Source: Sphaerodactylus townsendi (taxonomy: Eukaryota). From it: a DNA stretch of 64,000 bases. The notes below the pieces were generated by a model. The model was not told the origin of the DNA, did no database searches, and worked only from the letters and a program-made list of their open reading frames with translations. Of the stretch, positions 1 to 7,815 are shown one piece after another. The DNA is taken from contig NC_059427.1 in NCBI RefSeq assembly GCF_021028975.2, positions 124,806,001 through 124,870,000 of the forward strand. Direction: 5' to 3'. The position numbers were made by a program, and so were the translations under genes. Numbering within the stretch: the first letter of the stretch is position 1; each line of letters starts with the position of its first letter.

Positions 1-729
1 AGACTGTTGCAGCTTTAACGGCCCTCACAGAATGCAGGAGCATTCCCCGTGGAAGTTACCCATCCTCCTTTCTTCAAATAAATATTTTCAGAAGTACACA
101 ATTTTCTTATTATCATCTTTGAGGAAACCACTACCATTTTATGAGTCTAACAATTTCAGGGTATAATTCCTTAAATGCAAAACTTTTAAAAACCATAATG
201 GCCTTATATCAGTACAAGATTGAGAATGATTTTCAGGCACAGGAAAAATAAACCATCCTACAGTCAGTAATAGATGTGCATAGGAGCACTGAGACTACTG
301 TGTTGTTCGTATGCCCCAGTTTGTCAACCATCTGAGCCATTTTCACTCTGTAAGCATTTCTGGACTATAATTGTTCTATGTATGAAAAAGATATAGCAGA
401 ACAAGCCGCCTCATTATTGGGGATAGGGTATGATCCTCTGCAGTGTCCATATGTGAACTGTTAAGATCAGAGAACTCTGTAGTACATTCTGCTGATACGT
501 TCAAGTGAGGTTTCTCTCCCCCACCCCCAGGTAACACTATCACTGCATACTCCATGGGTGTACTGGATCACATAATGTTGGCTTGCCAGCTATAGTTCCT
601 TCCAGTCCTCAAGCTATATACAACTGTAGCATTTTACCAGCTTCTGCTCCTGTAAGAACAGTATTCGTTATTTTCTCTCACTCTCTAAACCTTGACAGGA
701 ATTGAGGCAAAGGGCTTGAGGAATGGACT

Positions 730-735
730 TTTATT
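730..735 (-). terminator. Candidate polyadenylation signal of the 14-3-3-like gene
   Basis: TTTATT on + (AATAAA on -), about 170 nt downstream of the stop. Confidence 0.6.
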
Positions 736-901
736 TCTAGTAGGGTATTAAAAAGCTGAAGACATCTGCACCTATCTTGTTCATTTAGGGGATGGATCTG
801 GTACCTGGATGAACACAAATACTAAGAATGTATCACACAGCTACCCATCATTAGCTCCCATGATTCTGTTCACTATGGCTATTTGTTGGTTCCGGACTCT
901 A

Positions 902-1648
902 TTAGTCTTCAAACTCTCCCTCATCACTCTCCTCCTCCTGTGGTTGTTGGTCACCAGTCCACTGTAGAATGCTGTCCCTTAGGTTCTGCATGATAACGGT
1001 GGATTCCTTGTAGTACTCTAAACTAAGGGTCTCCAAGCCAGCGATGGCCATATCAAAAGCAGACCTTGCTAGTCTAGTTGCCTGTTGAGGGTTGTTGACA
1101 ACCTCATAGTAAAAGGTAGAGTAATTCAGGGCTAGTGCCAGGACCAAGGGATGAGTAGGTTCCATACACCATTGACTGATTTCCTGAGCCTCCCCATAGG
1201 CTGTCTCTGCAGACTTCACTAAAGTCTCTTTGGCATCAGGCAGGGCTACTTCAGCTAAGTAGCGATAGCTGTCTCCTTTCATTTTCAAGTAAAAGGCTCG
1301 GCTTTCATAATCTGTCTCACCGCAATGTTTCAATAGCATATTGTCTAACAGGCCAAGACTCTCCCAGCACTGAGTTTCCAGCTCTTTCTTAATGATCTCA
1401 CGGTAGGCTTGAGCTTGCTCTTTCTGCTTTCCAACAGTCTGCTCCACAGGGTACCTTAGCTGACGCCAAGAGGAGCAGTGTTGTCGTATTAGGAATGTAT
1501 AGGCCTCAGAAAGCAAGGTCCTTTCCTCATGGGTCAATGGATCCTTTCCTTCCATCACAAGCTGCTTCATGGCAGCAGCCATATCTGTGTATCTGCCACA
1601 TTGTTCTGCTAGCTGTGCTGCCTGCACCAGCTGCTTGCGACTCAGCAT
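902..1648 (-). CDS. Intronless, divergent 14-3-3 gamma-like protein (probable YWHAG-derived retrogene), 248 aa
   Basis: First ATG at 1648 (MLSRKQLVQAAQLAEQ, cf. gamma MVDREQLVQKARLAEQ); TAA at 902-904; no frameshift. Gamma-type segments: DMAAAMK, LLDN, CGETDYES, FYLKMKGDSYRYLAEVA, PTHP, LALNYS, WTGDQQ. The track start at 1795 is a TTG. Confidence 0.93.
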   Translation of the reverse strand: MLSRKQLVQAAQLAEQCGRYTDMAAAMKQLVMEGKDPLTHEERTLLSEAYTFLIRQHCSSWRQLRYPVEQTVGKQKEQAQAYREIIKKELETQCWESLGLLDNMLLKHCGETDYESRAFYLKMKGDSYRYLAEVALPDAKETLVKSAETAYGEAQEISQWCMEPTHPLVLALALNYSTFYYEVVNNPQQATRLARSAFDMAIAGLETLSLEYYKESTVIMQNLRDSILQWTGDQQPQEEESDEGEFED

Positions 1649-1743
1649 TGACAAGGAGAGACTGAAGATTTCAGACAGGCCTGTATGGATCAGGGGATGG
1701 GTTGTACAGTATGACACAGGTAACAAATGTTGACATAGGGACA

Positions 1744-1789
1744 GGAAAATTCTGGAATGTTCTAGGAAAGTTCTGGAACATTCTTGAAC
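1744..1789. promoter_or_regulatory. Heat shock element array (9 alternating nGAAn units)
   Basis: gGAAaaTTCtgGAAtgTTCt-a-gGAAagTTCtgGAAcaTTCttGAAc: 4 perfect units, a 1-nt slip, then 5 perfect units, about 100-140 bp upstream of the 14-3-3-like ATG. Confidence 0.75.
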
Positions 1790-2815
1790 AGCCAACCTAT
1801 TTCACACAAGCCGTGTGGCATTCTTTTGTCATGCTAAGTTTACAAAATTCTACTAAATGAATGATTTAGCAATCCTCCAGGGCAACTGATATGTGTAGAG
1901 TCTGAACAGAGGAGGTGAGTGTTAGGACAATCAAACGGAAATGTGGATTTAGCAGAGATGTGATTTAGCTGGACACTACAAATGACAGAATTCCAACGAT
2001 GTTGCAGATACTACACAATGACAGTATAAGAAGGCACAACACAACAAATCATTATTTGTAACCACTATAAGAAATGCAAAGCAAGGTGGTAACTTTTATT
2101 GGGCCACAAGTTATTTAAAAATTAATCAAATGAATTCACACTTATTGGTATGTAGCGATTTATAACCTTCTCCCCCTCCCCTTCTTTTTTACAAAGTTTG
2201 AAAGTGAGGGAATAATGATAAAATATAGTTCAAACAACAATAATCAGAGTACATGGAAGTAAAAAATACCAAACCACATAAAAAACCAACAACAATATAT
2301 GTGGACACCCCATCTTTAGTGATTTAAGAGAACTATGTATATAATGTAACCTGTTATGGCCTGATACCACAAACTGGTAAGAAATTAGACAAAGTAGTAC
2401 TTCCCATTTTCTTTGAGAGGGTGAAAGGGGGAGAGAGGGAGGTGGAATAGGGCAGGCAAGCAGTACAAGTCAGAAATTTAAACTAGTTTCATCCCTGGCA
2501 GTAGTCCACACTAGTGATTTATTTTATGTACATACCTCACCTTTCTCCCCAACAGAGGGAACCTAAAACAGCACACATATCCAAAGTGCATAGGATTAGC
2601 AGCCTCCAGGTGGGGCCTTTACTACTCCCGGCGGCCTTGAGCCTGGCCTTTGCAGGTATAGGGTGGGGTATAAATATAATAAAATAAGAATTAATCCATC
2701 TGATCTTCAGACTACAGAGCTTGGTTCCCTTGAAGGAAATAACAGCTTGGAAGGATGGGCTCTGCCTGAAGTAACACATCCCAGTCTAGTTCTCTCCCTT
2801 TATCAAACTCTATCC

Positions 2816-3271
2816 CAGTGGTGGCAAACCTATGGCACGGGTGCCAGAGATGGCACTCAGAGCCCTCTCTGTGGGCATGTGCAAACAAAGTTGCACCCCC
2901 CCCCCCACACACACACACACATATCTAGGCTGGCCTGGGCCACTGGGCTCAATTATTAGCATTAAACCTAAGACCTAGTTTTGGGGACGCAGTGTAGATA
3001 ACCCTGTTAAGCGCTGTTAAACCCCACTGATTTTCATACGAAGAACTAAAGCGCGATCCTTTACCTGCGAGTAAGCTCGGTTGCTTCAAAGCAAAGCCAC
3101 CGACTACCACCAAGCTTACTCCTGAGTAACGCACGCCTGGGAGCCAACCGTTTTTTTCTAAACTAAAACCTCAGTATTCAGGTTAAATTGCCGTGTTGGC
3201 ACTTTGCGATAAATAAGTGGGTTTTGTGTTGCAATTTGGGCACTCGGCCTCGAAAAGGTTCGCCATCACTG
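2816..3271. mobile_element. Non-autonomous hAT DNA transposon
   Basis: TIRs CAGTGGTGGCAAACCT...AGGTTCGCCATCACTG; perfect 8-bp TSD CTCTATCC at 2808-2815 and 3272-3279. Confidence 0.9.
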
Positions 3272-3707
3272 CTCTATCCTCTCCAGGCATCATCCCCAGT
3301 TATCCAGGAATTTCACGAACCGGAGTTGGTATTCTACATTGCACACACTTATCCAGAGATACATTATAAATTATTAATAGATGGGATTTACCCTTGCGCG
3401 CGCGTTTCAGAAATTAAGCCAGGGTTGGAGGGATCTCCAATAGCAACAGGGTTCAGAGGAACGAGGAAAGCTCTTTGGTTGCAAGTTCGAGGGCAGGATC
3501 CGAGTGCTTTCCGGAGACGACGGCGTTGGAAACAGGAGGGAGGTCTCTCCGCGAGAGGCGGATCCCGGGACTGCGAGACAGATCAATGGCGGAGAAGCGG
3601 CCATTCGGAGAGGGGCAAAATGGGGGCGTTTCTTCGGGCCTTATGTGGCGCGGGGTTATTTCCGCCCCCGGAGGCGAACTCTTAACTTGACGCGGCCGTC
3701 CTCTGGG

Positions 3708-7815
<4,108 letters not shown>

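Follow-up and report, generated by a model that had tools for sequence, protein, structure and literature searches.

The question raised by this locus is whether an uninterrupted 14-3-3 reading frame lying behind a heat-shock element (HSE) in the genome of the gecko Sphaerodactylus townsendi is a working gene and, if it is, where the gene came from, what its protein may still do and what switches it on. By the textbook count vertebrates have seven 14-3-3 isoforms, in all of which the phosphopeptide groove is practically unchanged, and the original prediction, made from the letters of the window alone (the window being the whole stretch of 64 kb analysed here), had proposed at this place an HSE-driven retrocopy with an altered groove. 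We describe below a functional gene common to all sampled squamates, and we consider what its sequence suggests about its origin, its protein and its control. The gene and its transcript are laid out as follows (window coordinates):

902-1648, minus strand: coding sequence of the paralogue derived from 14-3-3 gamma; 248 codons, followed by the stop at 902-904 (from translation, Pfam and RNA depth).
724-901, minus strand: 3' UTR, with AATAAA at 735-730 and cleavage after CA at about 724.
1649-1693, minus strand: 5' UTR of the main transcript, with a start-site cluster at about 1683-1693 in a conserved CCATACAGGCC block.
1797-1950, minus strand: minor upstream exon or alternative start, with ATG at 1821-1819, donor GT at 1796-1795 and acceptor AG at 1682-1681.

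Translation of the window gives, at 902-1648 on the minus strand, a stop-free frame of 248 amino acids, and no splice joint inside the gene is listed in the RNA reads; the intact, intronless 14-3-3 frame of the original prediction is therefore borne out. The Pfam 14-3-3 profile (PF00244) matches it with an E value of 2.5e-70 over positions 2-223 of 223, and the best match among solved structures (PDB phmmer) is 14-3-3 gamma (262 bits, E 4e-77, residues 1-238), followed by eta (248 bits), zeta (225), beta (222), theta (212) and sigma (209). Over all of its 248 residues the gecko frame agrees (100% identity) with the C-terminal part of the S. townsendi entry P0233, an annotated isoform of 267 amino acids named "uncharacterized protein". 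The gene model itself is not new, as genome pipelines already list it under the name "14-3-3 protein gamma-like"; in the full-text literature we found no paper describing the gene, its age, its groove changes or its HSE. The gap-poor alignment with solved gamma structures suggests that the nine-helix cup fold is kept, and the squamate paralogue is, as far as its sequence can tell, a member of the 14-3-3 family by descent and fold, not a canonical phospho-reader. The start codon (1646-1655) has a weak Kozak context, with T at -3 and either C or T at +4, conserved as TGTCAATGyTGAG in eight orthologous loci (L001-L008) and the window, and two in-frame methionines, Met23 and Met27, lie downstream of it; given this weak context and these methionines, leaky scanning could conceivably yield a form without helix A and the part of the dimer interface that this helix provides.

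For the transcript, reads from three RNA runs carrying the same species label (X6, X7 and X8) and one DNA-like run were examined over positions 1-4500 of the window, with a mapping threshold of 95%. Depth over 751-1650 is about 290x in X6 (both orientations summed), which corresponds by our own arithmetic to some 150-200 reads per kilobase per million reads; it is about 1x or less in X7 (three bins) and 0 in X8, the reads of these two runs being more divergent from the window than those of X6, so that some may miss the threshold. The gene is thus not silent in every condition, the outcome that the original prediction had named as fatal to itself. Since the runs carry no tissue or treatment labels, this on/off pattern could be purely tissue-specific. 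The main mRNA is unspliced, about 0.97 kb long, and starts 50-60 nt downstream of the HSE. Depth in X6 falls from about 207x (bin 751-900) to about 15x (bin 601-750), with molecule ends clustered at 723-725; the mRNA thus ends at the predicted poly(A) site, behind a CA and some 11 nt past the first letter of AATAAA. On the other side, depth in X6 thins out to 24 per orientation at 1683 and 14 at 1693, molecule ends being clustered there too, and the bin 1651-1800 averages 17x. The upstream exon is covered about 12x in the same run (about 4% of the gene body); its translation, MPHGLCEIG, is the N-terminus of P0233, and this minor exon with its ATG at 1821 explains the isoform of 267 amino acids. 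The predicted intron of 116 nt (1681-1796), whose joint does not occur among the splice joints listed for the reads, would hold the whole HSE array.

The original prediction had also placed the gene next to DCXR, and this neighbour is indeed there:

3708-3770, plus strand: first coding exon of DCXR (from translation), divergent from the 14-3-3 gene and about 2 kb away from it.

The DCXR exon 1 region, which served as a control, has a low depth of 1-7x in all three RNA runs. Between the two genes, at 2700-3300, lies an interspersed repeat, high-copy and transcribed (DNA-contig word depth up to millions, RNA depth 90-600x in all three RNA runs), which shows many variant letters and loose ends and contains a short (CA)n run at about 2890-2930.

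The synteny check proposed at the time was made within squamates. The order RAC3, DCXR, 14-3-3 gene, RFNG is kept in all eight squamate loci compared (an adh_short gene occupying the DCXR position in the orthologous loci), with DCXR upstream and divergent, RFNG downstream on the opposite strand, a single-exon gene model in 8/8 and no other 14-3-3 gene near the DCXR-RFNG interval. Intact orthologues were found in 20 squamate sequences, from geckos to snakes: geckos (Euleptes, Sphaerodactylus), lacertids (three species of Podarcis, Zootoca, Lacerta), the amphisbaenian Rhineura, the cordylid Hemicordylus, skinks (Lerista, Tiliqua and two from Logan contigs), anguimorphs (Varanus, Elgaria), snakes (Candoia, Python) and two species of Anolis. 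Among annotated proteins and Logan contigs, those 72-92% identical to the gecko frame come from squamates only. A profile made from ten squamate copies gives 489-524 bits for squamate proteins and 286 for the next protein, a fish gamma-1, with a gap between them. Sequence and profile searches of annotated proteins returned no orthologue outside squamates, and no cluster intermediate between the paralogue and canonical 14-3-3s appears in representatives clustered at 50% identity, a level which would hide one. A young gecko-specific copy can be rejected with orthologues extending from Gekkota to snakes; the "lineage" of the lineage-specific retrocopy originally proposed is the whole of Squamata and not the gecko alone, and the RNA-based origin in that proposal fits the data (see below).

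Is the gene under selection? All nine coding sequences available as DNA are intact, and their 36 pairs give a median dN/dS of 0.118 (Nei-Gojobori, NG86; range 0.077-0.218), values to be taken as approximate because several dS exceed 1 and are saturated. The comparison among orthologues suggested by the original prediction thus turned up constraint and no disrupted copy. Three variants carried by about half of the X6 reads fall in the coding sequence; two are synonymous and one, G110R, affects a position that varies between species. Anolis has the longest branch and the highest dN/dS (0.14-0.22), together with a decayed HSE. Intact frames in 20 squamate sequences, a dN/dS of about 0.12 and strong transcription make this a functional gene, not a pseudogene, and on the same grounds the idea of a processed pseudogene was discarded. 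Purifying selection and transcription are also what one looks for in a retrogene.

As for its origin, we think that a spliced mRNA of YWHAG (14-3-3 gamma) was probably inserted into the DCXR-RFNG interval at some time before the last ancestor that geckos share with lizards and snakes, thereby creating a squamate-wide eighth 14-3-3 gene, and that a burst of change would have followed, and then purifying selection. The RNA-based route from gamma is proposed because the parental intron is missing, the locus is unrelated and the proteins fall inside gamma+eta and outside eta. In the canonical gamma gene (seahorse gamma-1, L009) there is one phase-0 intron of 1.16 kb between codons 29|30, and the window frame runs through this site uninterrupted. 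The squamate gene therefore lacks the parental intron; this evidence is modest, as only one intron is at stake, and a loss of the intron by a non-RNA route is possible. At precisely the junction of the parental exons 1 and 2 there is an extra codon, Leu30 (1559-1561, minus strand), the sole indel relative to 14-3-3 gamma in the first 70 residues, which may have been left by the use of another splice site in the mRNA that was copied. The new locus, as expected of a retrogene, is the same DCXR-RFNG interval in 8/8 squamate loci. In a maximum-likelihood tree, a kind of analysis which the original prediction had called for, the squamate proteins are monophyletic (100/100); they belong to gamma+eta, a clade with 98/93 support, but not to the clade of eta proper (100/100), and stand on a stem of 1.1 substitutions per site, with tips of 0.03-0.25.

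Such a long stem could also mean age and not acceleration. One could then think of an ancient vertebrate 14-3-3 paralogue, duplicated at the DNA level, later deprived of its intron and retained by squamates alone, and the lack of retroposition scars would suit this idea: neither a poly(A) tract remnant nor a target-site duplication is seen at the locus, and no A-rich tract follows the cleavage site. However, the split of Gekkota from other squamates is dated to about 200 My ago in published timetrees, and after roughly that time the scars are expected to be gone, so their absence weighs little against a retrocopy. Against great age speak the nesting in gamma+eta at 98/93, the gamma-type residues that the clade shares, a locus unrelated to any 14-3-3 gene and the lack of a copy among annotated non-squamate proteins; we give this scenario very little credence indeed. 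An RNA-mediated copy of YWHAG, fixed before Gekkota separated from the other squamates, quickly changed and then frozen, is what the sequences indicate.

What would such a protein have kept of the 14-3-3 chemistry? The phosphate quartet K49/R56/R127/Y128 (zeta numbering), that is K50/R57/R132/Y133 in gamma numbering, is not complete in the squamate copies. Arg57 is replaced by Cys in 20/20 sequences and Arg132 is invariant in all of them; Lys50 is retained in most lineages and is Thr only in three sphaerodactylid sequences and both anoles (P0009, P0243), with Arg in one skink; Tyr133 has become Phe in lacertids and skinks. In the window protein K50 is T and R57 is C, with R132 and Y133 retained. 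Each squamate lineage thus misses one or two of the four ligands, not always the same ones. The original prediction that key phosphate-binding residues had been lost is therefore right for the gecko as regards both residues, and for the whole clade as regards R57 only; the loss of K50, confined to sphaerodactylids and Anolis, had to be abandoned as a feature of the clade. The change of Lys50 to Thr, with the next residue becoming Phe, arose independently in sphaerodactylid geckos and anoles, as a parallel change.

The changes extend well beyond the quartet. A set of 16 canonical 14-3-3s (from fish, with gamma, eta and zeta, and from amphioxus, insects and a brachiopod) has 135 invariant columns, and at 39 of these no fewer than nine of ten squamate copies carry a replacement; most of these replacements are fixed among squamates, and they are concentrated in three helices:

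Helix C: N43T, V47E, N51F/L, V52L, V53I, G54Q/R, A55E, R57C.
Helix G: I171L, R172A, G174A, V181I/T.
Helix I: L221V, L225H/N/R, L230I, T231V, L232Q.

Acidic residues have thus appeared at V47 and A55, beside the phosphate pocket. With residue lists for groove and dimer interface that we take to be those of the 14-3-3 zeta literature, groove positions are about as variable among squamates as the rest of the fold (1.81 versus 1.73 states, permutation p 0.38); the exceptional constraint on the groove is, to judge from the alignment, lost, without decay. We do not claim that the replaced positions are enriched in the groove, as our count by hand (10 of about 25 versus 29 of 110) is mild. The zeta dimer interface presumably rests on the salt bridges R18-E89 and D21-K85 and on S58, and of these residues (zeta numbering, from the assumed list) the alignment has R18, D21, E89 and S58 kept and K85 changed to T, I, A or S. 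Cysteines at window codons 17, 58, 94 and 109 are invariant in 10/10 aligned squamate copies; canonical 14-3-3s have no cysteine at two of these places, C17 and C58 (the latter being the former Arg57), and the remodelled pocket might be redox-sensitive.

With one or two of the four ligands gone from every lineage, dependence on phosphoserine would be weak or absent; residual phosphopeptide binding is possible, as K50, R132 and often Y133 survive in most lineages. The anti-aggregation activity of 14-3-3 proteins is independent of the phospho-binding groove and of the C-terminal tail, and is linked to the dimer interface (PMC6678932). The squamate paralogue may therefore act as a client-holding, chaperone-like protein or as an adaptor of altered specificity, alone or dimerised with ordinary 14-3-3s, and it is a function of one of these two kinds that we infer from our comparisons.

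What drives the gene is a separate matter, for which two more features are needed:

1745-1788, no strand assigned: HSE array in two blocks, with five units at 1766-1788 (block 1) and four at 1745-1762 (block 2).
1694-1744, minus strand: core promoter, a conserved stretch that separates the HSE from the start site (alignments A1 and A4).

HSEs are inverted nGAAn repeats bound by HSF (PMC11570959), and the array, with its runs of five and four such units, goes beyond the three in a row that are asked of an HSF-regulated gene; it begins 50 nt and ends 107 nt upstream of where the start sites cluster. Its GAAnnTTCnnGAAnnTTC occurs twice in the 64 kb window (1745-1762 and 1766-1783) and in none of 100 shuffles. 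The array consists of tandem 21-nt copies (1743-1763 and 1764-1784, 86% alike), which gives 5+4 perfect nGAAn units with a 1-nt phase slip between the blocks. One continuous HSE of nine units can thus be rejected: of the nine-unit HSE originally seen directly upstream of the gene, the nGAAn array is real and its continuity is not, a 21-nt local duplication having produced the 5+4 arrangement. The slip at the duplication junction also creates TTCCTAGAA at 1760-1768, a site of the form TTCnnnGAA (STAT/BCL6-type) which other squamates, with their single-copy HSE, do not have.

Ancestrally the element is a single HSE of four units, at -109 to -116 from the ATG, found at the same place in other squamates, as the original prediction required. 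Four perfect units are present in 7/11 promoters (the gecko, Podarcis lilfordi, P. muralis, Hemicordylus, Elgaria, Lerista and another skink); Varanus has three, Candoia three perfect and one imperfect, and in Python and Anolis sagrei the element is degenerate, with two perfect units and imperfect ones. For skinks and Podarcis muralis we used Logan contigs with 120-870 nt upstream of the ATG, which look genomic and served only for the promoter comparison. In each 20 kb squamate locus that has an HSE, it is unique. Its distance from DCXR ranges from 1.3 to 5.4 kb across loci, whereas that from the ATG is fixed, and for this reason we assign it to the 14-3-3 gene; the genes of Python and Anolis, intact despite a degenerate HSE, tell us that it is not indispensable. 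The best conserved block of the promoter is formed by the HSE and the TGTCCCTrTGACATCAC that follows it, and the sequence further upstream cannot be aligned. A CRE-like TGACATCA (alignment A4, columns about 88-96) stands beside the HSE in 10/11 squamate promoters (exact TGACGTCA in Varanus) and reads TGTCAACA in this gecko (1735-1728), the lineage with the duplicated HSE. We saw no TATA box in the promoter.

Three readings of this promoter have to be compared. The best overall explanation, to which we give an even chance, is a squamate retrogene with stress expression driven by HSF through the HSE and with weakened phospho-dependence. The gene, its origin, its selection, its transcript, the conservation of its HSE and its residue changes enter this explanation as results; control by HSF, induction by stress and the biochemical activity are its interpretive part. 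The unspliced mRNA of about 0.97 kb would be made from a TATA-less promoter with a four-unit HSE (doubled in the gecko) and a CRE-like motif, and an HSF-family factor on the HSE would produce the on/off expression, heat or another proteotoxic stress being the likeliest trigger. The stress reading fits in that classical inducible heat-shock genes are built in the same way, an HSE being followed by a gene free of introns. Retrogenes are, on the other hand, biased to testis expression, and the HSE and the CRE-like site could be read by developmental HSF programmes and not by heat, in a retrogene specific to the germ line or to another tissue; HSF1 and HSF2, perhaps with CREM-type factors, would then act in spermatogenic cells at normal temperature. 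The all-or-none expression between libraries of one study is usual for tissue-restricted retrogenes, the TGACATCA/TGACGTCA motif lies beside the HSE in 10/11 promoters, and HSF1 and HSF2 are known to act jointly in spermatogenesis at physiological temperature (PMC11570959). Yet this gecko has lost the CRE-like site while doubling its HSE, and a perfect proximal HSE of four units would normally answer HSF1 under stress too, which is also why the two readings do not exclude each other. We regard the germ-line reading, tentatively, as a real possibility that falls short of an even chance.

It may finally be asked whether the HSE is the driver at all. The nGAAn block might serve a STAT/BCL6-type or other factor, or DCXR, with the protein being simply a divergent phospho-binding 14-3-3; the TTCCTAGAA created at the duplication junction, the K50, R132 and Y133 kept in several lineages, and Python and Anolis, which retain the gene with a decayed HSE, could be quoted in favour of this. 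TTCnnnGAA is found only in the duplicated gecko version, however, and what is conserved is inverted GAA/TTC in 5-nt phase; the HSE keeps its distance from the ATG while its distance from DCXR varies four-fold; and R57 is lost in 20/20 sequences, with acidic residues in place of V47 and A55 beside the pocket. We therefore consider this last reading improbable, and the HSF-driven squamate retrogene is the one with which we go on.

Taken to its full extent, this explanation would describe a dedicated heat-shock 14-3-3 of squamates: an intron-free, HSF-driven gene for a protein that no longer reads phosphoserine, working as an ATP-independent holdase or as a stress modulator of 14-3-3 dimers, serving thermal tolerance since the squamate ancestor, with the dosage of its HSE tuned between lineages. 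So complete a picture is speculative and, in our opinion, rather unlikely to hold in every part. If it were true, the paralogue would have contributed to thermal tolerance in ectotherms ever since that ancestor, and HSE dosage would have been doubled in sphaerodactylid geckos and left to decay in pythons and anoles. Whatever its fate, an eighth isoform kept by selection across all sampled squamates despite the loss of a phosphate-binding arginine is a natural experiment on what the 14-3-3 scaffold can do without full phospho-recognition. The natural HSE variants (doubled, intact, decayed) make the regulatory hypothesis directly testable, the gene may be a marker or an effector of thermal stress in ectotherms, and it offers an example of a retrocopy that has acquired the layout of a heat-shock gene.

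Several known systems can be set beside it. With 14-3-3 gamma (YWHAG), its presumed parent, the squamate paralogue shares about 55% identity, a full-length 14-3-3 domain, the gamma-type LALNYS and AAAMK motifs and the residues R132, N178, E185 and W233; it differs in having no intron, another locus, an HSE promoter and on/off expression, that of gamma being broad. The known "odd" isoform of vertebrates, sigma (SFN), may be likened to it in that its expression can be induced and is limited to certain tissues, and in that some of its residues are peculiar to the isoform; it has all four phosphate ligands intact, is present across vertebrates and is more distant from the squamate paralogue than gamma is (209 versus 262 bits). 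Mammalian processed 14-3-3 pseudogenes and retrocopies are likewise intronless and sit at unrelated loci, but they are mostly young and decaying, unlike the squamate gene, which is intact in 20 sequences, has a dN/dS of about 0.12 and is highly expressed. Inducible heat-shock genes of the HSPA1A type resemble it in being intron-free with a proximal nGAAn array some 50-110 nt upstream of the start; in the squamate gene, by comparison, no TATA box is seen, and its protein does not belong to an HSP family. A further parallel is the 14-3-3 zeta of Drosophila, which, in the account of Yano et al. 2006 given in PMC6678932, is linked to the heat-shock response and prevents aggregation independently of both ATP and the phospho-binding groove. 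The Drosophila protein is the ordinary housekeeping isoform with an intact groove, whereas in squamates a putative activity of this kind would belong to an extra, dedicated paralogue whose groove has been rewritten.
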